64,000 nt of DNA from Bugula neritina (taxonomy: Eukaryota > Animalia > Bryozoa), in NCBI GenBank assembly GCA_964035545.1, contig OZ037773.1:959751-1023750 (forward strand), given 5' to 3'. The first letter of the stretch is position 1; each line of letters starts with the position of its first letter. A program made the position numbers and the translations under genes. A model generated the notes under the pieces. That model was given only the letters and a program-made list of their open reading frames with translations, was not told the origin of the DNA and did no database searches. Positions 1 through 39,175 of the stretch are shown piece by piece.

Positions 1-2240
1 AGCTACTACTACTTCTCGGCCTTCCTGCACTTGAGACAGCACAGCGCCAACATTCTGGTCACTGGCGTCAGTGTTGAGGATGTACTCCAGAGCGGGGTCT
101 GGGTAGGCCAAGATGGGTGCCGTCAGTAGGCAACCCTTGAGGCGATCGAACGCTTCTTGTTCGACCGGGGTCCTCTGCCCCGTCACCCCCCTTTGCGGTG
201 AGCCGGTTTAACGGCTGGGCTATGCCCGCAAAGTCTGGTATGTATTGTCTGTAATACCCTACCAGCCCCAAGAAAGCCCGGAGTCCGGTCAAGTCTTGGG
301 GGGTGACCCAGTCTTCTATCGCCCGTACCTTTTCGGGATCCGTTGCCACACCGTTTCGACCGACAACGTGCCCCAGGTACTTGACCTCCGGCTGCAATAG
401 AGCGCACTTGGAAGGTTTGAGCTCAAGACCGGCACCTCGGAGTCTCTCGAAGACCTCCCGCAGATGACTGACATGTGTCTCGAAATCTCGGAAGATCACG
501 ATGACATCATCGAGGTAGATCAGCAGTGTCTTCTAATGGAGCCCGCTGAGGACTTGCTCCATCAGCCTCTGGAAGGTGGCTGGGGCAGAGGTTAACCCGA
601 AAGGCAACACCTTCCACTTCCACAAACCGTTCCTTGTGATAAACGCCGCTTTCTCCTGGGCGTCGGGACTCAGAGGAACTTGCCAGTAGCCACTCAGCAA
701 GTCTAACCTACTGAAGTACTTGCTGCCGGCTAGGGCATCCAATGACTCGTCAATACGAGGTAAAGGGTAAGCGTCCTGTATGGTTACGCTATTGAGTTTG
801 CGGTAATCCACACAGAACCGCCAACTGCCGTTTTTCTTCTGTACCAGTACGACCGGCGAGCTCTACGCACTATGGGCGGGCTCTATGAGGCCGCGGTCCA
901 GAAGATCCCGTACTTGTCGGCTAACCTCCTTTTCTTTTTCTGGCCCCAGCCTGCGTGTGGGTTGGCGGACAGGGACTGTCCCTGCAGTCAGCGGTATTTC
1001 GTGTCTGACAACTCCAGTCAGCCCCACGTCATGATCTCCGCTGCTGAACACATCACCGTAGTCGCGTAGCAACTTCGCCATAGCTTAATGTTCCTGGTTG
1101 CTCGCGCAGCCACCACAGGCTGTCTCATATAACTCCCGGATGTGAGTTGGGACCACTCCTCTCTTTTGAGTAGGGTGTCTAGGGGGTGTCTCCGTCGCAT
1201 CACCCAGCGACGGGCCCACGTCCTCTTCCTGGACGGAGTGAATTTGGCCCAGCATTGACCCAGCTGGAAGCTTGATGGGCTCGGTAAAGGGGTGTTGACA
1301 CACTGCACTAAGATCTCCCCTTGCTCAGTTAGTCGGTTTAAACTACTGGCGAGTTGGATCCTTTCGTGCGCGCCTTCAACGAACCCGAGTCTTGCTATCC
1401 GGTTGCTGTTCACTCGGCAGTGGATAGTGGCTCTGGAGCGTCCAGGTACAGTGCAGTTTCGAACTACCTGAACACCGCCCACTAAAGGACGCCCAAACTT
1501 ATTCACACAGGCGAGTTCTCGCCCGCCCATCAGCACTGCCGACTTGCCAAAGTCTATGCGGCATTGGTGCTGCTTCAAGAAAGGCATTCCGAGGATAGCA
1601 TCTTCCTTCAGCTGGCTTATGACAAAGGTCTCTTGTACAGCCTGGTCTCGGACACGCCCAGAGAGCTCGCTAATACCGTAGAAGGGAATACACGACCCGT
1701 CTGCTAGGGTGCCATGTTCTCCCGTAGGCCTATACGGTCGTACTCTATCCCTGTCTTGGCGGGGCAGTGCCTCAAAGACTCTACGACTGAGAAGGTTGGT
1801 AGTACAACCGCAGTCTAGCAGGAAGGTGACGACGTTACCCGCCACCTTTCCGGGTAGGAAGTAGCTCTCTCCGTGTGGTTGTACTTTCCCCCCCCCGCAT
1901 GTGTTGTCCTAAGTGGGTAGGACGGCGGGGGTTTTACCCGTGGTTTACGGGGTTTCCGGCGACGTGGTCGGTGCCGGCGGGGTTCGGAGCTCTCCACTGG
2001 GCCTTCTGGCTCTAATTTAGTGGCGGGCTGCTCTTCCCGAGGTAACCGGTGGAACCGGTTGGTGAGTGGCAGGGAGAAGGTACTCGGCCGCTGTGCGGGC
2101 CTGCTAGTCCTGCGTGGTACCTGCCACTCGGGGGGAGTGTACCGTCGTGTCCGTACGGACAGGCGGCAGCGTGTCCCACCCTGTTCCTTCAGTTTCGGCC
2201 CGCGGGGAGGAAGGGCGTCCGCGGGCCGTGACAGTTTAAC
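1..2240 (-). pseudogene. pol: G1 pol (PR-RT-RNase H start), frameshifted and with stops
   Basis: ORF fragments 68-499, 533-811, 863-1081, 1085-1303 and 1018-1845 are collinear with G4/G5 pol. Confidence 0.92.
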
Positions 2241-3055
2241 GCCCCCTGGTGTTGGGGTCGTCCTGGCTGTCTATGGTCTTGACCAGCACTAGTCCAGCCC
2301 GGCCCCGCAGGTGCTGGGGGCAACCGCGGTTCCTGACCGGGGCCAGCGCTGGCAAGAATCGTTACCAGCTGTCCCAACATCTCTACCATACGGCCCACTT
2401 CGGCTTCCACAGGGGGAGCTTTGGGGCCCGCCGTAGCTCTGGCAGCACTGACTCCAACTGCTGGTGGGTTCCCTTGCGCTCGGTGCATTTGGGTAGCTAA
2501 CAGATAAGCTTCTCCAGCCTTTAAGGCATCCTCTATCGTGGTGATCCCTTTAGCTCGTAGTTGGTAGTGTAGGCCCAGGTCGTTCAGTGACTGGACGAAA
2601 GCGTCGTAGGTGTAACGCTCTTGGTGTTGTGCTGGTAGGTCACCATATGCAATTTGTGCCAGCTTCTTCACCGTCGCGGCATGCTCTTGCAGCGAGGTCC
2701 GCGGGGTGCGGCACAATCTCTGTAACCGGGTCCTGGCGTCTATTGCGGAGATGCCAAAGCGGCCCCGCAACGCAGCCAATATCCCGTCTACGTCCGTTCC
2801 TATTCCGTACGGCTTGGCTTGCTCCGCCAACGCTCTCCACAACTAGATAAGGGCCACTCTATGCGGCCATTGTGCAATATTGATGACTTCTCTAAACTCC
2901 TGTATAAACTATTCGACATCTTCTGACCCAGTAAAGGTGGGGGCTTTCAAGCGATATCGATAAGCCTCTTTTCCCACATGATTCACAGGAATGACATCAT
3001 TTCTTCGCTCACCTTCTACTGGGGGTGGTTGCATTCTAGCATTTTCAGTCTCCAT
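2189..3055 (-). pseudogene. gag: G1 gag with one premature stop (~2843)
   Basis: ATG at 3055 (METENA...); highly similar to the uninterrupted G4 gag 32637-33503. Confidence 0.9.
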
Positions 3056-3069
3056 CTTTGATGTACACT

Positions 3070-3087
3070 ATCCCACCGCTGCCACCA
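3070..3087 (-). promoter_or_regulatory. Primer-binding site complementary to the 3' end of tRNA-Leu
   Basis: TGGTGGCAGCGGTGGGAT, 1 nt from the LTR end, is the complement of ATCCCACCGCTGCCA-CCA (tRNA-Leu AAG/TAG type). Same or near-identical PBS at 18695-18712, 32605-32622, 53264-53281, ~57737-57754 and 60444-60461. Confidence 0.9.
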
Positions 3088-3088
3088 C

Positions 3089-3394
3089 TGTTGTATTTTT
3101 CAGAATTAGGGTTGATGTGTAACCAAGAGAATCTATTTATTGCTAGAGACTTCACCAGGATTAGTCGGGTTGATATCGTTGTATTTTAAGCACAAGAATA
3201 CATAATAAAAAGGATATACAAACTGATAACAAATCACACGTCTATTTAATTTACTGCACTATCCTCAACTGACTAGTAGCGCGAAGTTAACTACTGCTAC
3301 TCACTAGCAGCTTCGCTAATTGGCTGAGTACATTGTTCCGGGTCAATACGCGACCCTGCGTATTGTGCTGTTGGTAGCTCCACGAGCCACCACA
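3089..3394 (-). repeat. 5' LTR of G1
   Basis: 306 bp, TG...CA, similar to the G4/G5 LTRs. Confidence 0.92.
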
Positions 3395-3778
3395 GTGGCC
3401 TCCAGCCTACATTTATGCGGCTCTCAAAGGCATAACAAATAAAACTATTTTTCACACATATATGAATTTGAGAGATAAACCAAATTTTGAATGTATTATT
3501 TATATAAATGCTAAAAAATGTAGTATGCAGTAACTATTGGGACTTTATTTTGTATTGATAAATAAGACTTTAGAATGATATATCTAAAAATAACTGACGC
3601 TGCGGTACCCAGTTCAAACTAAAGTTTAAAATATGGCTGGTGCCACTGGAATATTCCCCTTCAGAGGCACTCCCTTTGAAAGGTTGGACACCCCTGGTCT
3701 AGCACCTTACATGTCAACTAAAAATTTCACATTCAAAGAGTAGGTATAACTAGAAAAATATTGATGATGCTTACTTAC

Positions 3779-6415
3779 ACTGTGGTGTGATGGCAACAGT
3801 TTGTTCAGTACTCCCTCTCTTCCAGTTAGAATGTTTTGTATCTGTACAGAATAAAGTTAGTCCAGCTCTGTCTGTCTCTGTGGGAGTATATTTTCCAGCC
3901 ACTGTGTTACCATTTACCTCTGATAAACAAAACATGTATATGTATACTATTTCTTCAAAGACTCCCTGCACACTTCACTTATGCAGTACTGAAAGATTCT
4001 TATAATAATATGTTAGTTTTCATTTACATACTATTTTAAGGTTGGATGGTAAAGGTAAAGGCGACTGGAAATTTGATTCCCATGCAATCAGAAATCCTAA
4101 AACATTTTAGCATATACTTAAACAACATTCATCTTAAAACAGAATGCAAATGAAAAGTAACATATATAAGAATATTTTAATACTGCATAAGTGAAGTGTG
4201 TCAGGGCAAGAAAACTACCAGAGAAGAAGCAAAACATATAAATACAGTCTACAAGCACAATTCTATGGTAAATTTGCTCAGGACTCATTTATGCACATTT
4301 TCTACTTTCCTGCAATACTTAAAAAAATAAATTGAAAAGATTTTTCTGTAACAGTTGCTAAATCAGCCTTAAACCTTCTTTTAGCAAAAAAATTTAGTTC
4401 CAGCTTAATTTTAATAAAAAATTTCACGATATAACAGGCGAGTTAGTTTGTGGTTGACGAATATTATTGGTTATTTAATTGAGACTGAAAAAAAAGACTG
4501 TAGACACTTTTTTTCGAATCATCTAACTTTTTACATTTCAATCTATTATAGCAAACTGATTTATAAACTATTGTAAACTCATTAGATAATATTCTTAGAG
4601 TTTTACAACATTCAAATATTTATATAATTAAATAGGAATACAGACTCCCTCGAAACCTACTGGTCCCGATACCCTTATCTGTGACATAGCAGAATACCAG
4701 ATTTAACTCACAGAACAGTTAAATACCGACATTTTGTCTCTATATATACGCATATACATAAGTTACAAAAAGAAAATTCAAGTTCATCTCATGTCTTATG
4801 TTACTTTGTCAGGAATGGACAGCTCTGAGATATGAAGGGAGCACTGCATATTTCATCACTTGTATAACAATAATTAGCTAAACTAAAACCTGGTTTGTTG
4901 TTCACTAAATTTAAAATTTAATTTGCTTCTAGTTTTCTAGATAGAAATTTGGGGAAGCTTGTTGCACAACATTTAGACAGGTATATACTTACTGTATTCA
5001 TAGACTGACACAGGATCTGCTCCTGTAGAGTTACAATCAAAGGTAAATTCTTCCCCTTCTATAATAGTTGCTGGTTTATTAAGTGATATGCCAGTTGGAG
5101 CAACTGTAGAATAAAGAAATGCACAATATACATTTTTAAATACAGGTGCATTGATGTATTGTAAATTAGGTTAGGACTGCAGTAAGGGCCGTGTGCTATA
5201 TCCTGGGTAAATTGTGTCAATAAAAAGTGTAAATTTAAGTAGCAAAACTGCAACATTCCAAGTCTGCCTATGATAACAGTTATCTGAAACTACTTGCCAA
5301 CCAGATATCCTTATGTGATCCTAAACAGAAAATCTCAAACAAAGGCATAATAAACTAAAATTTGTCCTCTACCAAACAAGGATAGGAAATATACTATTTT
5401 GATTTAACTAACCACCACCATCATGGGAAAAGTTAAAGTTTATCACGCGATCTTTCCATGAGATACTGAACAGAATTTTTCAACAAAGGCCTAATATAAC
5501 AAATATTATCCACTATCCATAAAATGCATATCAATCACACTATTTCAATACCAATAATACCAATCTTGGGAACAGTTAAATTTGTCTATGAGGAAGAAGG
5601 AGGAAATTAGTTAGAAACTATGAGAAGTTGTACTAGAAATGGCTAAAGTGGTATATAAAGGCTATCAGTGACCAACGAAATTAGTTTGAAGTGTTCACCT
5701 TTGACTTCCATTGAAATTTTTAAGGAGAGAACTTCTCCCACACCACCTCCTTCAAACCCTCTACAGTAGAACTTCCCTTTGCGTGATGAATCAGTTGCAG
5801 TGAGTTGTACAGAAAGAGTGAACCCTTCAGGTTTACCAACTGAGTTACAGTCTGCATGGCTGACTCCAGAACCTTCTATTCCAGAGACAGTAATAATTTC
5901 TGGAGTTGATGAACTCCGCCATACTGTGTCATCCTCAGCACTTCGAGTACATCCACTTTGATAGATTGTACTGTCTCCATCAGCTTCATATCGTAACTGT
6001 AAAGTTCTCAGATCAGTATAACCAGATGCTTCACATGTGAAGGTTATATTCTCATCTTTATAGAAGTCAGGTGAGCTTGTAGTAGTGTAGTTCATCTCTG
6101 TAGATGGTTGACCTAAACATATGTCATTTTAATAGTTTAGCTCAATACTAATCCAATTGTGGAAATGAAAAGAAGAATTTTGGCCAACTCATTCAGACTT
6201 TTATGTGACACTGCCATCACAAGAAAGGAACATCTACAAGTTGTGTGAGCATAAAAATCATATGTAAAAGGAATAGAAATGTGGTTACCAACATTCATTT
6301 AAAAGTAAGAACCAGACTTATCAATCACTGAAAATTTATTCAGAAATATTCACTTACCAATTGTGTAGCTAAATAGTACTAATACTTTAAAAATGGTTAT
6401 CCAGGGAAGTTTCAT
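3779..6415 (-). CDS. Ig-superfamily receptor gene copy 1, exons visible in window: 6358-6415 (signal peptide), 5699-6112 (V-like Ig), 4993-5103 and 3779-3919 (second Ig domain); downstream exons beyond G1 or outside the window
   Basis: All exons have canonical AG/GT sites and phase-1 junctions. They splice in frame to MKLPWITIFKVLVLFSYTIGQPSTEMNY..TFTCEASG..GKFYCRG..EVKVAPTGI..FTFDCNSTG..LTLFCTD..; paired Cys typical of Ig folds. Confidence 0.85.
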
Positions 6416-7299
6416 ATTCCTGAAAATAACAAATAACACTAAATAGTATAAATACTGGCCTGCATACTTAAATATATATTAGCTATAAAAACCAGCTAGG
6501 AAAAAATACTGGATAAAGAAATGTTATAAAATTAAAGAAATTCATAAAAGCAAACGCCATCATTATGATGAATGAAGTTAACAGCTGGAAATGTAGAAAC
6601 TGCCTACAAATGAGAACCAGTGAATTAGTGTGTGCAACAGACAGCAGGGTGGCCAGAATCATCTTGAGGTCACAGCAAATCAAAGCAAGCCAAGTCACTG
6701 GCTAACCAAGTTAGGTTTAGCGGATTGAAAACAATGACTGGAAAGAAAATAGATTGAATAGATTTCAAAGTTGGATAAGTTAGTTTTAATTTCAACTATT
6801 TTGAAATTTATGTCTATCTACATAAATAGATTTACTGAAAACAATGATGAAGTTAAATTTAATATGTCATGCAATGCATTTCTCTACATGAATATTCTAA
6901 AGAGGAAAAGTTTTATTACAAGTAATTCAGACCTGCAAGCCTAATAAAGTGATATGTATATAAATCTAGTGTCAATTACAGACAAAAATAATCCAGTATC
7001 TATCTACAGTCATTATAATATCTATAAAATAACATAACTCTTTGTATGAGAAGAACAAGATGTAGTGTTGTCTTTAGTAAAATCAAATCTTTATTGTGAG
7101 TAGAATGGGTAGTCTGTATCAGGTGAGCTCCAGTGGCAGACTGAATCTACACTGAGAGCTCATCTGCTTTTATACACAAAAATTCACAGTCCAGAACAGG
7201 GATGGGCAAATGTTTTTGAAATGGGGCCGGTGACAGGGCAATTGTGGGTGGGCCGGCCAGGTCTTTTTTATCTGGCTGCCTGGTAGTCCGGGATCATTG

Positions 7300-8560
7300 C
7301 CTCACCATGCCAAAGCTATCTGTATAGGCCGGGCAATAGTTGGTTCGATTGCGGTCGAGGTAGCGCTAGCTCTGATCAGCTGGGTAGATAGCAGGGTGGT
7401 AGCTTCATCTTTCATCTCCTGAGTTAGGTCCAAGCAGTTCATTGATGTGGGGTATCGCCGCATACTTCGGCCAACACGACCCGAAAAAGCTGCGTGACTG
7501 TTGGCCATGTGACTGTGCCGGTCTGAGGGTTGTGCTTCTGGAGTCGTCAGGAACATTCCGGATCCGAGGCTCAAAGTTTTTACCCGTATTGGGTGTACCA
7601 CTCCTCTGTGGGGACATCTCCAGGTGTCCCTCGTGGTAGTCGGCCAAATATCTAGGTGGCCTCCTACTCCTCTGGATTCTTTCAAAGGTGGCTGATCTTG
7701 TACCCTTGGTGGCTCCTTAGGTGTTGTGGGTAGGGGCCCCCACTGCCACCCGCGTCAGGGGTGGGAATGTCCTCCACTGGTGAGGGTGCTGGTTTTGGGG
7801 CCTGCTGCAATGGATGGTCTGGTGGCGGGGGTGGCTCCAGCTCAGAGTCAGGTTCCGGCCTCTTACAAAGATCACTACCTTTCGGGTTGGGTCACTTTCC
7901 CTCCAACTTTGGGTTGACGATTGGGCTTCAAGAGGGGTGAAGCTTGTCTTACTGCGTCTAGACTATCCTGGTATGGTATCAGGGGCTGCTCACTCTGAAC
8001 TGATACTTGCCCTAGCATTTCAAACAATACATGTGGTTGGGTAGCCCCTCCACCACACAGTAGGAACCCAATATTTTGGGCTAAAGCTTAGCCGGTTGTC
8101 CACATAGCCTACAATAGGTCACCATCCAGACCCAGTCCTCTGCTTGGTATAGGGGGAGCTACTCGAAGTGTTCCGTCCGCATCTGCCATTGCTTCTTCCG
8201 CAAAGCAGCATGGGCCTTGCCCATGATCTTTACCAGCTTCTCCATGTACTAATGTACTGGGGACTCGGGAGCTGGAACACGGTACTTCAGGTGATCCGGA
8301 ACCCGTGTTTGCCGGCAAAGCATCATCAAGTTTGAGGTCCCCTCCGTGCTGGATTGTGGTGTGCTACGGTAAGCTCGCATGATCTGAGGCAGCACCGCGT
8401 CCCCAGGAGATAAGTTGCAAGGGGCAGAGAGGATGATCCCACGATCGGGGAGCCCGCCTGTCGGCCTGGTCGCTTTGCAACTCGGTCACCGTAGCCTGTA
8501 GGCCCTTCACTATGTTCATCAACATGGTGAGCTGCGATGGCTCCGGCGATTTAGTAGTCC
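7300..8560 (-). mobile_element. Highly decayed Gypsy-derived remnant (also at ~40100-41350)
   Basis: Minus strand reads ..PKILGSYCVVEGLPNHMY..GQVSVQSEQPLIPYQDSLDAV, matching the family integrase C-terminus (PKFVGPYVIVEAMPNHTY..GQVSIQNESRLKPYWASPDAV). Present in both duplication units, so it predates the duplication. Confidence 0.65.
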
Positions 8561-8798
8561 GTGACACTAGTAAAACTAAATGTATTTTCAATGTGTCTGT
8601 TGGAGCACATCAGTTGTAACTGCAAGAGTGATTATTATTAAATTATTATTGTTAGCTACTTTATCAGCAATACTCTGTTATAATTTAAATAGTAATGCTA
8701 TAGCTCAATCACAATTGTATGTGTTAAATGAGTAAAAATTATTGCAGTATTTTCACGAGGAGATCTAGTCGGGGAGTCCCGCGTTTCTGTTTGAGAGG

Positions 8799-9047
8799 CT
8801 AAAGGCCAAGCTGAGAACATGGGTCGGTAACACTTTCTCGTCCCTTTAATCCAGCAATAAAGCTTACTGCCTTGTGCTCTAACATTTCCAGAGACTCAGT
8901 GTCTTTAGCTAATGTTGGATCCCATACGATATCTACGTACTCAAAAATGGAACGGATTAGTGTAGGCCAGTAGCTTACCTTCTCTGGGGGCATCATGTAG
9001 AACATGTTTAATTGCTCCCAGAATTTTTGAGGCCTTTTCCTTTTCAA
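8799..9047 (-). mobile_element. Non-LTR (CR1/L2-like LINE) ORF2 C-terminal fragment; duplicate at 41572-41820
   Basis: TLIR(S/P)IFEYVDIVWDP..LEMLEHKAVSFI resembles the LINE post-RT motif LVRPxLEY..VWxP..LExVQRxA. Confidence 0.65.
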
Positions 9048-10949
9048 ATGTAATATGATTGCTGTAGTGGTAATTTAATAATTACATTCAGTGGCTAGCT
9101 TTGGCTGGCATACGATATTGGCTGTCTGCATAATATGGAATATTATTGTTATCTGTATAAACTTCAGACTGCCATTGTCCTACCAGCAGACAGTCCATAT
9201 CAATAAGGTGAATAGATGAATAGACACATTGCGGTTTAGTATTGCAACAGCTTGACTTTACTGCTTATGATTTGGATTACATAATCCTCAATGACTAAGA
9301 TCATAAATACTTTCAATTCATAACTCTGCTGTCTAGAAACCAGAGTTTGACGACCTGCAGTAATATAGTTATATTGGTGAGTGTGGTGTATGTGTGGCTT
9401 GAAAGAAAATGAAAAGTATAAAAGGGAGTGTGTATGAGAGAACGAGAGGAAAGAGAGAGGAGAGATAGAGTGAATGAAGAGATTGAAGATTGTGCAGAAT
9501 GCATTAAGCTATATGAGCGAGTGCTAGCCCACTTGAGACTTGACAATACCCCTACAAACAAATACCTCTACAGACTGATGGGAGCTGGAGTCACCTCGCA
9601 GCCAAGCCAAGCGACCTGTGCCTGTATGCTGGACTCGAGCTCACCTGAAGGCTACAACCCAATTATATTATTCGGTGAGATGCAATAGCTGATAACTCCA
9701 TATCCCGATATAACATGATGATCCGATTTAAGGTTTGACTGCATTAAAATTCCCAAGTATGTTGTTGAGTCTCCCTAATTTATCTTTACTTTACCTAGCT
9801 TGTACAGAGGTTTGTAATTTCGATAGGAATACGAAATTGAATATGAATAACTATACCTAACTGTAACTATAACTATAAGTCAATAACTATTAGCACTACT
9901 ACTGGAATTGTGATTGTATTTATAATAATTATCACCATCACAATCAATATTATTACCACAATGAACATCTTAATCAAAAATATAACATCATTACTACAGT
10001 TTTAGTTTATTATTATCTCAGTTGAGGTAGCACTTCCGCAGCAACTGAAATGCCTATAGAGAGGGAAGCCTCTTGTGACAACTTATAATAATATTACACC
10101 AGAGTTAGCGCTTGTAGTTGTACTTGTTACATTTACAGCAATTGCTGTTTGATCAGTAATCATAATGAGTAATTGCAATCAGTTATTCATATATCATATA
10201 TGATATAATGATTCATTACTATTCAAATGGTGATCATAATATTATTATTAATCATAATGACAATCATAATGGATAATAAATATAAACTTCAATATGATAA
10301 TGATTGAAATTTAAATGTGAAAATCAAAAAGAAAATGAAAATCAAATAATATCATTATTAAATTTAAATCAAAATGTCATTTCACATTTGTCCTTGAAAT
10401 TGAATTTGACGAAAAATATTTAAACTCATATTCAAATTTAAAGTAGTAATAAATTTGTATACGTTTACGTATTTTATGACAGCTTCCACGCACTACTATA
10501 CTAGTGCAACACACCAATCAACAACTAAACATAGTCACTAACTGTAAAGTGAGCACTTAACATAATTAATTAAAGTAGTAAAAATAGCATAGTGTAATGA
10601 ATACCTAATAGTTGGTCGAGAATTCAGTGTTGCGTTTAGTATAACGTTTCATTTAAATAAGTTATCGCATCGCTTGATTCTCGCCTACGCAACGACTGCT
10701 AGTTGTATTAATTAGATAGCAGCACGCCCTCGCCCATTGGCTGTGGTTTGACGCTTTGGTAGCCCGGATGTTCGTTGCAGACTGAACCTACAGCTAGTAG
10801 AATAGTAGCGCTCTAGCAATGCAAGTTTCATCGCATCAATAACAATCAAATTTAATATGATATAATTATTAAAATGTAAATCAATTTGAATTGTGCATCA
10901 ACAGCACACGCGAATCTGCTTCTTCTAGCTCACTGTCACATGGTGCAAT

Positions 10950-28148: not shown

Positions 28149-31100
28149 CTTTTGATTATCCAACCACTCCTGAGACTACTACTGCAACTATCACTGGAAT
28201 GAAAGTAGAAAGTATGCCACCTATCAGACCTCCCTTGTTTACACCAGTTGTAGTGGGGGTTGTAGGGAGTATTGTGGCAGTATCCTTCCACATTATGTTC
28301 CATTTGATAGTCACCGTCTTTGCTGAAACCGATTTAAAGACATTTTGAAGAAAAAATAAGTTTAAACTTAAAAAACATCTACCACTAACATTAGTAAATT
28401 AGAAAAAACATTTACAATTCTCATTCATTTATATAAGTGCTAATTCTTACATAAGCCATTTTCAGCTGTACATTCAGCTGTTTCTGTTACACCGTTTGTC
28501 CGAGGAATTAGAGTCAGCGCATTGGATAATTCATTTGTCACAACTCCCTTATATGTCCAAGTGAACGTAGAGGGTGGTGGGTTGGCATCCACATGTTGGC
28601 TACAATCTAGTTTAGCATCAGATTGTCCAGGGTTGAATTCTTTCACAATTGGATCTGGATCATCAGCCTTTCTATCCAAGTCTACAAAAATAAAATTCAT
28701 AGCACAGGGCTGTCTAACACGAGGCCTTAGGACCGGATGTTGCCCCCAGCCTACATTTATGTGGCTCTCAAAGGCATAACAAATAAAACTATTTTTCACA
28801 CATATATGAATTTGAGAGAAAAACCACCTTTTGAATGTATTATTTATATAAATGCTACAAAATGTAGTATGCACTAACTATTGGGACTTTATTTTGTATT
28901 GATAAATAAGATTTTAGAATAAAATATTTGAAAATTACGGACGCTGCGGTACCCAGTTCAAACTAAAGTTTAAAATATGGCTTTTGCTACTGGAATATTC
29001 CCCTTCAGTGCCACTCCCTTTGAAAGGTTGGACACCCCTGGTCTAGCACCCTACATGTCAACTAAAAATTTCACATTCAAAGAGTAGGTATAACTAGAAA
29101 AATATTGATGGTGCTTACTTACACTGTGGTGTGATGGCAACAGTTTGTTCAGTATTCCCTCTCTTCCAGTTAGAATGTTTTGTATCTGTACAGGATAAAG
29201 TTAGTCCAGCTCTGTCTGTCTCTGTGGGAGTATATTTTCCAGCCACTGTGTTACCATTTACCTCTAATAAATAAAACATGTTCATGTATACTAATTCTTC
29301 AAAGACTCCCTGCACACTTCACTTATGCAGTACTGAAAGATTCTTATAATAATATGTTAGTTTTCATTTACATACTCTTTTAAGGTTGGATGGTAAAGGT
29401 AAAGGTAAAGGCGACTGAAAATTTGATTTCCATGCAATCAGAAATCCTAAAACATTTTAGCATATACTTGAACAAAATTCATTATAAAACAGAATGCAAA
29501 TGAAAAGTAACATATATAAGAATATTTTAATACTGCATAAGTGAAGTGTGTCAGGGCAAGAAAACTACCAGAGAAGAAGTAAAAAGTATAAATACAGCCT
29601 ACAAGCACAATTCTATGGTAAATTTGCTCAGGACTCATTTATGTACATTTTCTACTTTTCTGCAATACTTAAAAAAATAAATTGAAAAGATTTTTGTGTT
29701 ACAGTTGCTAAATCAGCCCTAAACCTTCTTTCAGCAAGAACAAATTAGTTCCAGCTTAATTTTGATAAAAAAATTTACGATATAACAGGCGAGTTGGTTT
29801 GTGGTTGACGAATATTATTGGTTATTTAATTGAGACTGAAAAAAAGACTGTAGACACTTCTTTCGAATCATCTAACTTTTTACATTTCAATCTATTATAG
29901 CAAACTGATTTATAAACTATTGTAAACTCATTAGATAATATTCTCAGAGTTTTACAACATTCAAATATTTATATAATTAAATAGGAATACAGTGCTCCCT
30001 CCAAACCTGCTGGTCTGATACCCTTATCTGTGACATAGCAGAATACCAGATTTAACTCACAGAACAGTTAAATACGGACATTTTGTCTCTATATACACAC
30101 ATATACATAAGTTACAAAAAGAAAATTCAAGTTCTTCTCATGTCTTATGTTACTTTGTCAGGAATGGAGAGTTCTGAGATATGGAGGGAGCACTGCATAT
30201 TACATCACTTGTATAACAATAATTAGCTAAACTAAAACCTGGTTTGTTGTTCACTAAATTTAAAATTTAATTTGCTTCTAGTTTCTTAGATAGAAATCTG
30301 GGGAAGCTTGTTGCACAACATTTAGACAGGTATATACTTACTGTATTCATAGACTGACACAGGATCTGCTCCTGTAGAGTTACAATCAAATGTAAACTCT
30401 TCCCCTTCTATAATAGTTGCTGGTTTATTAAGTGATATGCCAGTTGGTGCAACTGCAGAATGAAGGAATGCACAATATATATTTTCAAATACAGGTGCAT
30501 CGATGTATTGTAAATTAGGTTAGGACTGCAGTAGAGGCCATTTGCTATATCCTGGGTAAATTGTGTCAATAAAAAGTGTAAATCTAAATAGTAAAACTGC
30601 AACATTCCAAGTCTGCCTATGATAACAGTTATCTGAAACTACATGCCAACCAGATATCCTTATGTGATCCTGACCAGAAAATCTCCAACAAAGGTATAAT
30701 AAACTAAAATTTGTCCTCAACCCAACAAAGATAACAAATATATTATTTTGATTTAACTAACCACCATCATCATGGGATAAGTTGAATATTATCACTAAAT
30801 CTTTCCATGAGATACTGGACAGCATTTTTCAACAAAGGCCTAATATAACAAATATTATCCACTATTCATATAATGCATATCAAACATACTATTTCAATAC
30901 CAATAATACCAATCTTGGGAACAGTTAAATTTGTCTATGAGGAAGGAAGGAGGAAGTTAGTTAAAAACTATGAGAAGTTGTACTAGAAATTGCTAGAGTA
31001 GTCTATAAAGACTATCATTGACCGAAGAAATTAGTTTGAACTGTTCACCTTTGACTTCCATTGAAACTTCCGAAGAGAGAATTTCTCCCACACTTCCTCC

Positions 31101-31757
31101 TTCAAACCCTCTACAGTAGAACTTCCCTTTGAGTGATGAATTAGTTGCAGTGAGTTGTACAGAAACAGAGAACCCTTCAGGTTCACCAACAGAGTTACAG
31201 TATGGATTACTGACTTCAGGACCTTCTATCCCAGAGATATCAGTAATATCTGGAGTTGATATACCAACCCATACTGTGTCATTCTCAGGACTTAGACCAC
31301 ATCCACTTCTGTACATTTCACTGTCTCCATCAGCTTCATATCGTAACTGTAAGATTCTTAGATCAGTATAACCAGATGTTTCACATGTGAATGTTACATT
31401 CTCATCTTTATAGAAGTCAGGTGAGCTTGGAGTACTGTAGTTCATCTCTGTAGATGGTTGACCTAAACATATGTAATTTTAATAGCTTAGCTCAATACTA
31501 ATCCAATTGTGGAAATGAAAAGAAGAATTTTGGCCAACTCATTCATGTGACACTGCCATCACAAGAAAGGAACATCTACAAGTTGTGTGAGCATAAAAAT
31601 CATATGTAAAAGGAATAGAAATGTGGTTACCAACATTCATTTAAAAGTAAGAACCAGACTTATCAATCACTGAAAATTTATTCAGAAATATTCACTTAAC
31701 AATTGTGTAGCTAAATAGTATTAATACTTTAAAAATGGTTATCCAGGGAAGTTTCAT
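28149..31757 (-). pseudogene. Ig-superfamily receptor gene copy 2: exons 31700-31757, 31049-31462, 30342-30452, 29123-29263, 28451-28681, 28149-28322 (SP-IgV-Ig-Ig-Thr-rich stalk-TM); probably damaged or tailless
   Basis: Phase-1 exons splice in frame. Third Ig: KLDCSQHVDANPPPSTFTW..AECTAENG. TM: GLIGGILSTFIPVIVAVVVSGVVG, followed by TAA (28156-28158). Signal-exon donor reads TT instead of GT (31699). Confidence 0.8.
28705..29040. mobile_element. hAT-like MITE in an Ig gene intron
   Basis: TIR CAGGG(C/G)TGTC(T/C)AA...TTGGACACCCCTG with imperfect 8-bp flanks (TCATAGCA/GTCTAGCA); the paralogous copy ending ~3696 is interrupted by G1. Confidence 0.6.
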
Positions 31758-32636
31758 ATTCCTGAAAATAACAATTAACACTAAATAGTATAAATACTGG
31801 CCTGCATACTTAAATATATATTAGCTATAAAAACCAGCTAGGAAAAAATACTGGATAAAGAAATGTTATAAAATTAAAGAAATTCATAAAAGCAAACGCC
31901 ATCATTATGATGAATGAAGTTAACAGCTGGAAATGTAGAAACTGCCTACAAATGAGAACCAGTGAATTAGTGTGTGCAACAGACAGCAGGGTGGCCAGAA
32001 TCATCTTGAGGTCACAGCAAATCAAAGCAAGCCAAGTCACTGGCTAACCAAGTTAGGTTTAGCGGATTGAAAACAATGACTGGAAAGAAAATAGATTGAA
32101 TAGATTTCAAAGTTGGATAAGTTAGTTTTAATTTCAACTATTTTGAAATTTATGTCTATCTACATAAATAGATTTACTGAAAACAATGATGAAGTTAAAT
32201 TTAATATGTCATGCAATGCATTTCTCTACATGAATATTCTAAAGAGGAAAAGTTTTATTACAAGTAATTCAGACCTGCAAGCCTAATAAAGTGATATTGT
32301 GGTGGCTCGTAGAGCTACCAGCAACACAATACGCAAGGTTGCGTATTGACCCGGAACGATGTATTAGCCAATTAGCTAAGCTGCTTATGAATAATAGTAG
32401 CAGCTTCGCGCTACTAGCCCAGTTGAGGATAGTGCTGTAAATTAAATAGACGTGTGTATTATTAACTGTTGTATATTAGATTTTATTATGTATTCTTGTA
32501 TTCAAATATAACGATATCTACTCGACTTATCACGGTGAAGTTTCTCCAGTAATAAATAGACTCTCTTGGTTGCACATCGACCCTAATTCTGAAAATCATA
32601 ACAGTGGTGGCAGCAGTGGGATAGTGTACATCAAAG

Positions 32637-33503
32637 ATGGAGACTGAAAATGCTAGAATGCAACCACCCCCAGTAGAAGGTGAGCGTAGAAATGATGTTA
32701 ATCCTGTGAATTGTGAGGGAGAAGACGCTTATAGATATTGCTTGAAAGCTCCCACTTTTACTGGGTCAGAAGATGTCGAACAGTTTATACAAGAATTTAG
32801 AGAGGTAATGGAGATTGCTCAATGGCCGCATAGAGTGGCCCTTATCCAATTGCGGAGAGCGTTGACGGAGCAAGCCAAGCCGTACGGAGTGGGAACGGAC
32901 GTAAACGGAATACTGACTGCGCTGCGGGCCTGTTTTGGCATCACCGCAATAGACGCTAGGACCAAGCTACAGAGATTGTGCCGCACCCCGCAGACCTCGC
33001 TGCAAGAACATGCCGCGACGGTGAAGAAGCTGGCACAGATTGCGTATGGTGACCTACCAGCGCAACACCAAGAGCGTTACACATACGACGCCTTTGTCCA
33101 GTCACTAAACGACCTGGGCCTACACCATCAACTTCGAGCTAAAGGGATAACCAGAATAGAGGATGCCCTGAAGGCTGGAGAAGCTTACCTGTTGGCTACC
33201 CAAATGCATCGAGCACAACGGAACCCACCAGTAGTTGGAGTCAGTGCTACCAGGGCCACGACAGGCCCCGAAGCCCCCCCGCTGGAAGCCGAAGTGGACC
33301 GTATGGTAAAGATGCTGGGACAGCTGGTAACAATTCTGGCCGGCGCTGGCCCCGGTCAGGCCCTGCGGTTGCCCCCAACACCTGTGGGGCAGGGCTGGAG
33401 TAGTGCTGGTCAGGACCATAGACAGAAAGGACGACCCCAATACCAGGGGGCGTTTAACTGTCACAGCCCGCGGAGGCTCTCCCTCCCCGCGGGCTGCAAC
33501 TGA
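32637..33503 (+). CDS. gag: G4 Gag (288 aa, zinc knuckle degenerate)
   Basis: First ORF after the PBS; homologous to the other gags. Confidence 0.88.
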   Translation: METENARMQPPPVEGERRNDVNPVNCEGEDAYRYCLKAPTFTGSEDVEQFIQEFREVMEIAQWPHRVALIQLRRALTEQAKPYGVGTDVNGILTALRACFGITAIDARTKLQRLCRTPQTSLQEHAATVKKLAQIAYGDLPAQHQERYTYDAFVQSLNDLGLHHQLRAKGITRIEDALKAGEAYLLATQMHRAQRNPPVVGVSATRATTGPEAPPLEAEVDRMVKMLGQLVTILAGAGPGQALRLPPTPVGQGWSSAGQDHRQKGRPQYQGAFNCHSPRRLSLPAGCN

Positions 33504-36500
33504 AGGAGTCTGGTGGGACACGCCGTCGTCTGTCCGTACAAACACGACGGAACACTCCCCCCGAGTGGCAGGTACCACGCAGGACTAGCAGGCCCGCACA
33601 ACGGCCAAGTACCTTCTCCCTGCCACTCGCCAACCGGTTCCACCGGTTACCTCGGGAGGAGGAGCCCGCCACTGAAATGGAGCCGGAAGGCCCAGTGGAG
33701 AGCCCCAAACCCCGCCGGCACCAACCTCGCCGCCGGAAACCCCGTAAACCACGGGTGAAACCCCCGCCGTCCTACCAATCTAGGACAGCAAACGTGGGGG
33801 GGGGGTGAAAGTACAACCACATGGAGAGAGCTATTTCCTACCCGGAAAGGTGGCCGGCAACGCCGTCACTTTCCTGCTCGACTCCGGTTGTACTACCAAC
33901 CTTCTCAGTCGTAGAGTCTTTGAGGCACTGCCCCGCCCCGCCGGGACAGGGATAGAGTACGACCGTATACGGGGGAACATGGCACCCTGGCAGACGGGTC
34001 ATGTATTCCCTTCTACGGTATTATCGAGCTCCTTGGGCGTGTCCGAGACCAGGCTGTACAGGAGACTTTTATCATAAGCCAACTGGAGGAAGATGCTATC
34101 CTCGGAATGCCTTTCTTGAAGCAATACCAGTGCCGAATAGACTTCAGCAAGTCGGTGGTGCTGATGGGCGGGCGAGAACTCGCCTGGGTGGATAAGTTTG
34201 GGCGTCCTCTGGTGGGCGGTGTTCAGGTAGTTCGAAACTGCACCGTGCCCGGACGCTCCAGAGCTACTATCCACTGCCGAGTGAACAGCAACCGGGTAGC
34301 CAGGCTCGGGGTCGTTGAAGGCGCGCACGAAAGGATCCAACTCGCTAGTAGTTTAAACCAACTAACTGAGCGAGGGGAGGTCTTGGTGCAGTGTGTCAAC
34401 CCCTTTACCGAGCCCATTGAGCTCCCAGCTGGGTCAATGCGGGGCCGGTTCCACTCCGTCCAGGAAGAGAACGTGGGCCTGTCGCTGGGTGACGCGACGG
34501 AGACACCCCCTCGACACCCTACTCAGGGACGAGGGGCAGTCCCAACACATCTCCGGGAGTTATATGAAACAGCCTGTGGCGGCTGCGCGAGCAACATGGA
34601 ACGCCAAGCGATGGCGAAGTTGCTACGCGACTACGGTGATGTGTTCAGCAGCGGAGATCATGACGTGGGGCTGACTGGAGTTGTCAGAGACGAAATACCG
34701 CTGACTGCAGGGACAGTCCCTGTCCGGCAACCCACACGCAGGCTGGGGCCGAAAAAAGAGAAGGAGGTTAGCCGACAAGTACGGGATCTTCTGGACCGCG
34801 GCCTCATAGAGCCCGCCCATAGCGCGTGGAGCTCACCGGTCGTACTGGTCCGGAAGAAAGACGGCAGTTGGAGGTTCTGTGTGGATTACCGCAAACTCAA
34901 TACCGTAACCATACAGGACGCTTACCCTCTACCTCGTATTGACGAGTCATTGGACGCCCGAGCCGGCAGCAAGTACTTCAGTATGTTAGACTTGCTGAGT
35001 GGCTATTGGCAAGTCCCTCTGAGTCCCGACGCCCAAGAGAAAGCGGCGTTTATCACACGGGACGGGTTGTGGAAGTGGAAGGTGCTGCCCTTCGGGTTAA
35101 CCTCCGCCCCAGCCACCTTCCAGAGGCTGATGGAGCAAGTCCTTAGCGGGCTCCATTGGAAGACACTGCTGATCTACCTCGATGATGTCATCGTGATCTT
35201 CCCAGACTTCGAGACGCATGTCAGTCGTCTGCAGGAAGTTTTCGAGAGACTCCGAGGTGCCGGTCTTAAGCTCAAACCTTCCAAGTGCGCTCTATTGCAG
35301 CCGGAGGTCAAGTACCTGGGGCACGTTGTCGGGCAAAACGGCGTGGCAACGGATCCCGAAAAGGTACGGGCGGTAGAAGACTGGGTCACCCCCCAAGACT
35401 TGACCGGACTCCGGGCTTTTTTGGGGCTGGTAGGGTATTACAGGCAATACATACCGGACTTTGCGGGCATAGCACAGCCGTTAAACCGGCTCACCGCAAA
35501 GGGAGTGACGTGGCAGTGGACCCCAGTCGAACAAGGAGCGTTCGACCGCCTCAAGGGCTGCCTGCTAACGGCGCCCATCTTGGCCTACTCAGACCCCACT
35601 CTGGAGTACATCCTCGACACGGATGCCAGTGACCAAAATGTTGGCGCTGTGCTGTCTCAAGTGCAGGAAGGCCGAGAGGTAGTAGTAGCCTACTACAGCA
35701 AGTCTCTCTCACCCGCTGAACGAAATTACTGCACTACCCGCAAGGAGCTGCTGGCAGTAATCAAGTCAGTGAAGCACTTCAGACCATACTTATACGGCAG
35801 GAAGTTCCGGCTGCGTACGGATCATGCCTCGCTGATCTGGTTGTGCAAGAGAGCAGAGCCCTCCAGTCAGGTCGCCGGTGGCTCGAAATCCTAGCTGAAT
35901 TCTCCTACCGGATCGAACATCGACCGGGCAGGAGACACAGCAATGCGGATGGTTTGAGCCGCCGACCTGATGGAGGTTGCAAACAGTGTCTCAACATCGA
36001 GAGGAGGGACGGAGGTCCCCCGCGATGTGAGTTGGAGACGCTGGCTCGCCATGGAGCACTGTTTGACTGGGACCAGGGTCAACCCAGACAGGAGGTTGAC
36101 GAGTCCCCGGAGGTTGTACAAAACCTCCGCGCCAACCCTGTACTGGCCGATAGTGTACGAGAGCTGAAGAAGCTCCAAGAAGAGCTGCCTGGAGTAGTGG
36201 CAGACATATATCGGGCCAAAAAGGAAGGGCGACGACCCAGCGAGGAACGCATAAGACAGGGATGCGCCGAGTTCCGGCTATACTGTCAGCGTTGGGACTC
36301 GCTGCGGATCGGGCAGGATGGTCTACTGACCATTTCTCTAGCTGCCAGCGGCAGACACCCGGAGAGGAAGAGGGTGGTCTGTCCCACTGCCATCCGCCGT
36401 GAGCTGATTTGGGACACTCACAAACAGGCCCACGCAGGGGTCAAGAGAGTGATCTCCAAATTACGGCTCCGGTGGTATTGGCCACAAATGGAGCGTGACG

Positions 36501-38084
36501 TCCGACTCAGAGTCAAACAGTGTGAGATCTGCCAGGCCAGTAAGCATAGCCGTTCCCCTGATGAAGCGGGACGGCAGAGGCTATATGCTGGAAGGCCCTG
36601 GCAAGTAGTCGCTGTAGACCTGGTCGGACCCATGCCCCTGACCCCCAGAGGCAATAGTTGGATCTTAGTACTGACCGACCACTTTACTAGGTGGGCGGAT
36701 GCTCTGGCTATCCCAGATGCGTCAGCCCCAACAGTGGCCAGGGCATTAGACCAACATGTATTCTGTTATTTTGGTCTCCCCGAACAGATACACTCTGATC
36801 AAGGCGCTCAATTCCAGTCTCAACTGATGAGCGACCTTTGCTGCCTCTTGGGAGTAAATCAGAGCCGGACCACACCCTACCACCCTCAAGGTAACGGGGT
36901 GGTAGAGCGCAACAACCGGATGCTAGGTGATGCGCTCCGGAGCCTCCTCCTTGGACGCGGCCAAAAGGAATGGGATACGGTGTTGCCGCAAGTCATGCGT
37001 CCATACCGTAACACCCAACACACCAGTACTGGTGAGACCCCAAACCTCTTGATGCTCGGGAGAGAGACTCGTGTCCCTGACCATCTTACCTACCACGTTC
37101 CAGAGCAAGACAACTCGGTTCACGAGTATGCCAGTGAACTAGTGGAACGGATGAAGGCCGCACACGATATACTGCGCGAACAGCAGTGGAAGGTGCGGCA
37201 CGAAGATTCCGAGGAACCACCTCTCTACCAAACGGGAGATAAGGTGTGGATGGTCAATCACCGTAGGCGTCGCGGGCAGGCTGACAAATTAAAGCCTAAG
37301 TTTGTGGGACCCTACGTGATCGTCGAGGCTATGCCCAACCATACGTACAAGATTGAGCGCTCAGGACAGGTGTCTATCCAGAATGAGTCTCGCTTGAAGC
37401 CGTATTGGGCTAGCCCCGACGCAGTGGGAGAAGCCCCCCCGTTGTTGGAGCCCAGGAGGCAGACAACAACACGCGGGTGACGGCGGCATGGACCTGAATA
37501 CGAAGTGGTCATACCGCGGGAAGAAAACTTGGTGAGAGAGGAGCGACAGCTTCTGTCAACAGAAGCGTGTCCGCCACCGCCAAGTCTAATTCCATCACTT
37601 CCAGAAACCGAGCCGGTTCCGGAAGTGCAAACCCCCACGGAGGGAGGGGCTCCATCCGGAGAACAAGAAGAGGTGACCGCTAACGGTGAAGTAGAGACGC
37701 CATTAGAGGCCCCTACTAATAAACCGGCGAGCGTGTCACCCCCCCTAGAACGGGGACAGCGTACGAGGAAACCCCCACCATATTCTAAAAGACTTCGTAT
37801 GTGACTGCATTGAAAGCGGCACGCATGAAAGTCTAGGGGAAAACCGTACGATAAAATGTTGGAATTGTGAAACCCACGCAAATATCAACTTTTGCGAGGG
37901 CGGAATAGTGGGAGGAATTAATGCGCGTAAAGCAAATAGTTCCGACCTCGTGCCTCAGAAACGATGCTCAGCCTTTTCTTACGCTGACATCGCCAAAGGC
38001 AGACGTATCTCACAACCAGCTCCAATCTTACCAAGAACGTTGAGTATGGACATTAATACCGAGTTCACAGGTAATCCAGTATGA
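33452..38084 (+). pseudogene. pol: G4 pol (PR-RT-RH-IN) with a few frameshifts and stops
   Basis: LLDSG, YLDD, DTDAS, integrase HHCC/DDE and KFVGPY in ORFs 33805-34077, 34107-35894 and 35843-37480. Confidence 0.93.
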
Positions 38085-39175
38085 GTCTTGTATTCCTATC
38101 CATGGAAACGGGCTCGATGCCAGTAAATTCTGAACTAATTCAACAGATTGAATCAGAATTACTGGGAACCACATTTCACGTGAATGACGATGAAGACACT
38201 GTAATGGCCGACGGTCTGTTAGACCTGGAGCTAGACACTGTTCTTGGTCAGTCCACACATGATTCACTGGTTCCTCGAGTGCATTCTAAAAGTTGTGACT
38301 CTCAGGCTAGTAACAGTCGACAGTCACTAGAATTATGTTGTAAAGATCCACCGCGATCTAACAATAATTCTACTTTTGTAGACACACTCGCGCCCGTCTC
38401 TCCGGGCATGCCTTCTCTAGAGATGGCGTGGGATCCAGAGCCGGCCCCACCCACTTCCACAACCAGACAACTACCACCCCAGTTGGAAGCAACCTCTAAC
38501 TGGACTACCCGTGCCACAGAGAGAGAGATTAAGACTCATAGAGGAGATGACAGTAACCGCGAATGCCGCCTATGTCAGCAGCGGTTTACAACCCATCGTA
38601 GGCTGAGAGTCCACTTGCCACAGCATTACATCACAACGTTCTGCCCATGCGGAGAATATAGTTACAATCGTGATTATCTACTGCGTCACCAACGCATTAT
38701 GCAGTGCTTTCAAGGACACGTCTATGAAGTAGACAAATCATCATATCCCGCATTCCTTAACGCCATCAGACCCCTCATCACCGACTCGGCTTGGCTGTCT
38801 CGCCTAGAGCAAGGCTTTCCCTCCCCTCGACCCATCATCTCTGAAACCATGGATAAGCCTACAAAATCAGCTAACTCCCCACCTCTCAGTCCTATACGCC
38901 AACCGCATACACTCCCCCGTGTCGTACTACAGAGGGTAGACACGAAGGCGTATACACTCCCTCCCCCACTTCCATCTTCAGAACGAAAAAGGCACAGACA
39001 GCAGACTTTCTCTCGTTCTTCCCCTCTGGCCCGCAACTTACGTGAAGTAGAAGCTAGGGCACACGACCTGGAGCAAGAAGTGTATAGACTGGCCCCGCGC
39101 GTGCATGCTGCATCCAGTGAACTCAAGTATCTACAGGAGTCTATTAAACGCATGAAGCGGGCGGCCAACGATTAA
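38046..39175 (+). CDS. G4 spliced accessory gene: exon 38046-38070 + exon 38382-39175; ~272-aa C2H2 zinc-finger/coiled-coil protein
   Basis: MDINTEFT-G|gtaatc...ctaac..ttttgtag|AC in frame; CRLC-x12-HLPQH, CPC-x12-H-x5-C, basic ERKRHR, C-terminal heptad repeat. Confidence 0.75.

Follow-up and report, generated by a model that had tools for sequence, protein, structure and literature searches.

Two neighbouring immunoglobulin-domain genes of Bugula neritina share nearly identical upstream DNA and diverge most, by far, in the exon encoding their membrane-distal domain, which raises the question of what made that exon diverge. A first-pass annotation of the locus had read the contrast as diversifying selection on a recognition surface. 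The answer reached here is a different one, and we consider it probable: the two genes, designated A and B, are paralogs of a bryozoan family of the immunoglobulin superfamily (IgSF), and the contrast in the distal domain combines an old block of a gene-conversion history with a surface patch that changes at a neutral rate, diversifying selection being undemonstrated.

Self-comparison of the window (the whole stretch of 64,000 nucleotides that was analysed) gave a 7.5-kb unit present in two copies, carrying genes A and B, both on the minus strand and spaced 25,344 nt apart. Positions 3395-6955 match 28739-32297 with 94.5% identity, and 6952-10948 match 39760-43707 with 96.6% identity. Gene models were built from stop-to-stop frames and splice sites, and have the following parts.

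6358..6415, minus strand: copy A exon 1, the ATG and a hydrophobic leader of 19 residues, with a phase-1 end at a GTAAGT donor (paralog support)
5699..6112, minus strand: copy A V exon, 414 nt, phase 1-1, a V-set Ig domain with four Cys (AlphaFold2 model and structure matches)
4993..5103, minus strand: copy A exon 3, 111 nt, first half of Ig domain 2, phase 1-1 (AG/GT sites)
3779..3919, minus strand: copy A exon 4, 141 nt, second half of Ig domain 2 (splice sites)
6956..10948, minus strand: upstream part of the copy A unit, with its counterpart at 39760-43707, 2.2% diverged
31700..31757, minus strand: copy B exon 1, leader; the donor at 31699-31698 is TT, not GT
31049..31462, minus strand: copy B V exon
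30342..30452, minus strand: copy B exon 3
29123..29263, minus strand: copy B exon 4
28451..28681, minus strand: copy B exon 5, bulk of Ig domain 3, with the motif ..PPPSTFTW.YKG.. (Pfam Ig_3, E = 0.0027, under the curated cut-off)
28156..28322, minus strand: copy B exon 6, with the G strand, a Thr/Pro stalk, a hydrophobic stretch of about 24 residues and the stop TAA (28158-28156)

All four exons of copy A are in phase 1 with AG/GT sites. The leader exon pattern M..W.IT..L.L.SYT.G, followed by GTAAGT, is also found 5' of the V exon in two paralogs, L004 and L010, whose V domains are about 55% identical to those of the window genes; since exon and donor are conserved there, the leader exon of copies A and B is confirmed. 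Another leader candidate for copy A, at about 6217, was dropped: its donor is out of phase, while the exon at 6415-6358 has the support of the paralogs. Within the window, copy A stops at a retroelement (position 3394), exons 5 and 6 lying beyond the window edge, and a complete protein, from signal peptide (SP) through V, Ig, Ig and stalk to a hydrophobic C-terminus, is spliceable in copy B only. Its conceptual product of 373 amino acids comprises the leader, a V-like domain of 138 codons, an Ig domain of 84 residues spread over two exons, a third Ig domain and the Thr/Pro stalk, the second and third Ig domains being small and of C2/I type, and carries five N-glycosylation sequons. We conclude that copies A and B are head-to-tail paralogs of the IgSF, encoding small surface proteins with three Ig domains.

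Both copies are accompanied by retroelements.

32298..39759, plus strand: Ty3/gypsy LTR retrotransposon of 7.4 kb, 540 bp upstream of the copy B ATG (LTRs, Pfam domains)
2..3394, minus strand: partial gypsy LTR retroelement in intron 4 of copy A, 90% identical, in inverted orientation, to 32298-35689

The first element has LTRs of 306 bp with 3 differences between them, TG...CA ends, a 4-bp target duplication (ATAT), and the domains RVT_1, RT_RNaseH and rve in Ty3/gypsy order according to Pfam. It splits the unit of copy B, and the empty site is present in copy A. The element in intron 4 of copy A has its LTR terminus at 3394, which leaves 57 nt to the position of the exon-5 acceptor, and copy B has the empty site. 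One gypsy element contains a weak V-like match (49292-49537, E = 3.5e-4), which no other family member reproduces and which was taken as chance.

These insertions bear on the status of the duplication itself. The identity of 94.5-96.6% over 7.5 kb falls within the heterozygosity range of marine invertebrates, and could in principle reflect two haplotypes of a single locus set in tandem by the assembly. Such an artefact is scarcely credible here: the window has zero Ns, the retroelement insertions differ between the copies, with a clean target duplication, exons 5 and 6 of copy B are located between the two copies, and an independent metagenome contig, L004, also carries tandem genes of the family.

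The order SP-V-Ig-Ig-stalk-TM, as initially annotated, stands for copy B as far as the stalk. For the "TM" at its end, an anchor of GPI type, or one without a tail, is the better reading, the stop codon coming right after the hydrophobic tail. After a Thr/Pro stalk of about 20 residues, the protein ends in ...TTTGVNKGG followed by 24 mostly hydrophobic residues, the final ones being ...VVVSGVVG, and it has no cytoplasmic tail. Copy B thus combines the sequence hallmarks of GPI-type proteins: a leader, a C-terminal hydrophobic stretch of 15-25 residues, small residues before it and no cytoplasmic residues. The first gene of contig L004 likewise has a hydrophobic tail and then a stop, and this matching ending supports a GPI-type anchor as a trait of the family. 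With no cytoplasmic tail, signalling would require a membrane partner.

The V-like identity of the distal domain, also proposed in the first-pass annotation, is supported at the level of the predicted fold. AlphaFold2, run with 20 family members, gave a model with 10 strands and a pLDDT of 95.8. All top 50 Foldseek matches were antibody or nanobody V domains (probability 1.0), and VIA-align gave Z scores of 9-10.7 over 105-118 residues with TCR, antibody, CD8, nectin D1 and MPZ, those with TCR and antibody V domains being about 10, which points to a V-set Ig domain. Cys26 (in TFTC, B strand) and Cys116 (in FYC, F strand) form the B-F pair and are conserved in at least 90% of the 20 family members, in which a second pair, Cys54/Cys88, is invariant. 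The Y-x-C tyrosine corner is conserved as well; strand C, which in V-set domains carries an invariant Trp packed on the disulfide, reads L-x-L-x-Y, and a conserved Trp64 sits in C''. Sequence-based searches scarcely see the domain: Pfam returned just Ig_3 for V of copy A, at a sub-threshold E = 0.072 (14 bits, cut-off 30), and nothing for V of copy B, and PDB sequence and profile searches with the V domain gave nothing significant, the best profile E value being 0.08, for a light-chain V domain and JAM.

The counts on which the initial reading was built could be reproduced almost entirely. Between the two V exons (6112-5699 and 31462-31049), 51 of 414 nt differ, with no indels; 34 of 137 residues are replaced, and the four Cys (26, 54, 88 and 116) are kept in both copies. 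Codons with silent changes only number 8, not the 6 or so first given. Exons 3 and 4 together (252 nt) show 5 nucleotide differences and 2 replacements, the upstream DNA from the ATG to the retroelement site differs at 1 of 540 nt, and intron 1 at 3 of 237 nt. The V exon is significantly richer in replacements than Ig2 (Fisher P = 5e-7), while the contrast in silent changes between the two is not significant (P = 0.16). At replacement sites, divergence of the V exon is 13 times that of Ig2; the membrane-distal V-set domain is, as had been stated, by far the most diverged coding part of these tandem Ig receptor-like genes.

A 13-fold excess is compatible with diversifying selection, balancing or positive, on a V recognition surface, as in allorecognition or immune loci, conversion being tolerated outside the V exon only. 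By the Nei-Gojobori method, Ig2 has dN 0.011, dS 0.053 and omega 0.20, and the V exon has dN 0.136, dS 0.135 and omega 1.01, a value that is also expected from a mixture of strong purifying and strong positive selection. Because about 77% of V sites are non-synonymous, the ratio of replacement to silent changes carries no signal by itself (a base-rate effect): random placement of the 51 substitutions gives a mean of 34.6 replacements, compared to the 34 observed.

The distribution of replacements along the domain is far from uniform. They fall in 3 of 58 columns conserved in the family and in 31 of 78 variable columns (P = 2e-6), omega being 0.13 in the former and 2.1 in the latter; the value of 2.1 is not significant (P = 0.095). 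For the middle third of the exon, omega between A and B is 1.45. Residues 48-87, which cover strands C', C'' and D plus a short helix, hold 19 of the 34 replacements (scan P = 0.004), and the BC and FG loops, at CDR1- and CDR3-like positions, are nearly free of them. The raised values at variable columns and in the middle third, the concentration at the C'-C''-D edge, and the retention of framework and Cys residues are all compatible with selection on a recognition surface; so are a conversion tract that reaches only to the 5' boundary of the V exon and a host that is probably colonial.

These patterns have to be set against the rates measured with more sequences. A maximum likelihood (ML) codon model on ten V exons, 8 from metagenome contigs plus copies A and B, gave an omega of 0.53 overall and of 0.52, 0.64 and 0.46 for the successive thirds, some of the metagenome V exons being pseudogenes that pull omega towards 1. 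Among four phylogenetically independent sister pairs, omega was 1.00 at the 34 sites of A-B difference, and 0.61 at the remaining sites; for individual sites, pairwise methods and a sample of ten sequences offer little power. The initial annotation had itself named a dN/dS of at most 1 with more sequences as counting against its proposal, and this is what was found for the domain and for its thirds, the omega at the variable columns leaving room for selection at individual sites. No estimate is significantly greater than 1, the whole-exon omega and the replacement count match the neutral expectation, silent sites and the adjoining intron 2 are raised as well, and a splice donor is broken in one copy. 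We therefore regard diversifying selection as unlikely, and the claim of it does not carry over from the initial reading. Across the family, the positions distinguishing A from B appear to be free of constraint and not demonstrably driven; positive selection at some V sites is possible, evidence for it being absent at the level of the domain and only suggestive at the level of sites.

What remains to be explained is the raised silent and intronic divergence, which led us to the non-coding divergence between A and B along the unit.

6113-6955, from the V exon to the retroelement site: 0.5%
Further upstream: 2.2%
Intron 2: 8.2%
Intron 3: 4.2%
Intron 4: 5.7%

The heterogeneity among these five segments is very strong (P = 1.5e-19). 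Silent divergence of the V exon (12 of 93 sites) is statistically indistinguishable from the divergence of intron 2 (P = 0.17), and it is above that of introns 3 and 4 taken together (P = 0.002). The simplest reading of the A/B contrast is a gene-conversion mosaic, a product of concerted evolution. The leader and the upstream or promoter side would have been homogenised very recently, and the Ig2 or downstream side at an intermediate time, so that the V exon and intron 2 would be the oldest block left in the mosaic. Within the V exon, just over half of the codons, mainly at the C'-C''-D edge and in the short helix that follows, would change at about the neutral rate, with the V framework under purifying selection. 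Roughly, the age of the block may account for about 2.5-fold of the replacement excess of V over Ig2, and relaxed constraint for a further 5-fold or so. The real signal at the A/B pair would then be this conversion mosaic together with the neutral-rate surface patch.

The mosaic may extend into the V exon itself. At the centre of the exon, A-B identity is 79-84%, no higher than that between either copy and the paralogs at other loci. A and B group together (support 92/92) in trees built from the exon flanks, and the tree of the centre does not join them. An AU test does not reject A and B as sisters in the centre (P = 0.23), and these data are only suggestive of a mosaic inside the exon. A recent conversion of the variable patch of copy B from another paralog, L006, was ruled out, silent divergence there being 0.58 despite the similarity in amino acids.

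The same divergence profile helps to date a lesion of the locus. At the intron-1 donor, copy B has TT where copy A and the paralogs have GT, and with this mutated donor it may be doubtful whether copy B is a working gene; at least one member of the pair seems to have been disabled recently. The differences in V could then be no more than neutral decay, one or both copies being pseudogenes. The retroelements in intron 4 of copy A and upstream of copy B, the V omega of about 1, and the existence in the family of a pseudogene V exon with a stop (L009) would all fit such drift. The V exon has no decay signature, however: replacements avoid the conserved columns, with the low omega given above, and changes are symmetric between the lineages (25 compared to 23 for A and B). 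Under random change, the probability of no stop and four kept Cys is 0.035, and Ig2 is itself constrained. Moreover, because the donor mutation lies in the recently homogenised tract of 0.5% divergence, it postdates most of the V divergence. Decay of dead genes is thus a very improbable source of the V contrast. We favour instead a pair that diverged by conversion and neutral change and that would now be in a birth-and-death phase, copy B having lost its intron-1 donor and gained an upstream gypsy element, and copy A carrying its own in intron 4.

The pair belongs to a wider family. An exhaustive phmmer search of 1.84 billion representatives returned 24 clusters of true relatives (less than 50% mutual identity), with identities of 27-71% and all consisting of short unannotated ORFs that continue past the V exon into intron sequence. 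Their sources are Bugula neritina metagenomes (JGI 3300003318 and 3300002729, and Logan runs SRR4020080-84). Two further matches, P0016 and P0019, were rejected as spurious low-complexity or repeat matches, P0016 being a Wolbachia ankyrin protein. Profiling of the metagenome contigs with a 7-sequence alignment and with one V domain gave no match. In each of four DNA runs, which represent no fewer than three samples and two studies, more than 1,200 short contigs aligned to copy B at 85-99% identity, and no splice joints were seen. Each site of the V exon was covered by 8-21 distinct contigs per DNA run, counts in which alleles and paralogs are mixed, and it is this coverage in all four runs that indicates a large family. 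As far as these sequences go, the family is large, unannotated and so far found in bryozoans only, and it is a genuine bryozoan IgSF family, apparently not described before. Its members would use the distal V domain for recognition or adhesion outside the cell.

Contig L004, with its two tandem genes and compact introns, is also informative on the contrast between domains. Compared to the window genes, its V domain is 55% identical, and so is not more diverged than Ig2 and Ig3 (34-45%). Variable V domains on constant stalks are therefore a trait of recently converted neighbours and not of the whole family.

Among known systems, IgLON and Drosophila DIP-type proteins are three-Ig, GPI-anchored adhesion proteins that recognise partners through the distal domain; they form a conserved neuronal family with an I-set first domain. 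The bryozoan proteins resemble them in having three Ig domains on a GPI-type anchor. They differ in that their domain 1 is of V-set and not of I-set type, measures 137 residues and carries an additional disulfide, and in forming a family that is large, fast-evolving, lineage-restricted and tandem; the phmmer search of the 1.84 billion representatives gave no sequence match to IgLON or DIP.

The Alr family of the Hydractinia Allorecognition Complex is closer in several respects. Domain 1 is the most variable part of Alr proteins, and its V-set character is barely detected by Pfam and clear in the predicted fold (Huene et al. 2022, PMC9546547). This domain has no B-F Cys pair, and the proteins continue with an Fn3-like spacer, a single-pass transmembrane segment and a cytoplasmic tail that often has an ITAM or ITIM (PMC9546547). 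Shared with the bryozoan genes are the tandem clusters, the SP-V-set-Ig-Ig surface proteins and a colonial marine invertebrate host, as well as a V-set domain missed by profiles, a most variable domain 1 and a short helix after C''/D. The bryozoan V domain, in contrast, has the B-F Cys pair, and copy B has neither an Fn3-like spacer nor a tail with ITAM or ITIM, its hydrophobic C-terminus being followed by the stop. The first-pass annotation was right to be cautious about homology to Alr: among the 1.84 billion representatives, phmmer found no Alr relative, the matches being Bugula-metagenome fragments and the two spurious repeat proteins. The resemblance to Alr is architectural and ecological, and on each testable feature the bryozoan genes fall outside that family.

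A large, lineage-restricted, unannotated family of V-set receptors is nevertheless a reasonable source of candidates for immune, symbiont-related or allorecognition roles. Bryozoans are colonial, with colony fusion and kin-biased settlement described, and Bugula neritina is the host of a bryostatin-producing symbiont. One could imagine a histocompatibility-like system, in which arrays of V-C2-C2 receptors would serve colony, kin or symbiont recognition, with old V lineages kept by balancing selection and shuffled by conversion. We hold this to be clearly improbable; if true, the locus would have no precedent in Bryozoa and an origin independent of Alr and FuHC, and no recognition receptor of this kind was found for Bryozoa in the literature searched.

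The reading that we prefer, of paralogs shaped by conversion and neutral change, has its counterparts in the KIR/LILR, CEACAM, fish NITR and amphioxus VCBP systems, multigene clusters of V-domain receptors that evolve by birth-and-death and gene conversion. Although the bryozoan family is unrelated to them in sequence, and belongs to a phylum from which no receptor of such a kind is known to have been described, it has in common with them the tandem arrays, the pseudogenes, constant parts that are homogenised beside a distal V domain that has diverged, and members without a tail or with a GPI-type anchor.

Relatives of the window's V exon were found on metagenome-derived contigs. On contig L002 (positions 381-4214), a V-like exon is followed by exon-3-like and exon-4-like segments and then, about 300 nt further on, by another V exon; from this exon order, the contig may either encode two V domains in a single family member or hold a truncated gene with a leaderless gene after it. 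The V exon of L009 (positions 1-632) has an in-frame stop and has lost its C-terminal frame, and a second partial V copy lies about 110 nt upstream; this exon is a pseudogene or a partial duplication within the family. On L001, a B. neritina metagenome contig, positions 1303-1410 encode 36 residues of a V exon that match residues 61-96 at 67% identity. The fragment is flanked by a retroelement's RT ORF on one side and its RNase H ORF on the other. This piece is either a captured fragment or the product of a chimeric contig.

At the 3' end of copy B (28149-28158, minus strand), one of the window's two tandem Ig-domain genes, a consensus donor, AAAAG/GTATGA (the slash marks the splice boundary), lies 6 nt past the stop codon TAA. 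Extended to this donor, exon 6 would measure 174 nt with phase 1-1, matching the phase of the other exons. Judging from sequence, the donor may be a remnant either of an ancestral form with a tail or of an alternative isoform.

Within the copy B introns, contig depth from four DNA sequencing runs was raised over three short stretches:

28695-28813, copy B intron stretch of raised depth
29290-29646, copy B intron stretch of raised depth
30004-30122, copy B intron stretch of raised depth

Summed depth there was 10 to 40 times that of neighbouring sequence in all four runs; these stretches are high-copy interspersed repeats.

ORF reading of the Ty3/gypsy LTR retrotransposon upstream of copy B (plus strand) gave two long ORFs, neither of which had a Pfam match:

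32637-33500, long gypsy-element ORF
38081-39172, long gypsy-element ORF, the 3' one of the pair

Of the window's 25-kb repeat period, considerably more than half is made up of retroelements, and GC content is bimodal across its whole length, at about 33% in host DNA and 50 to 57% in retroelements.
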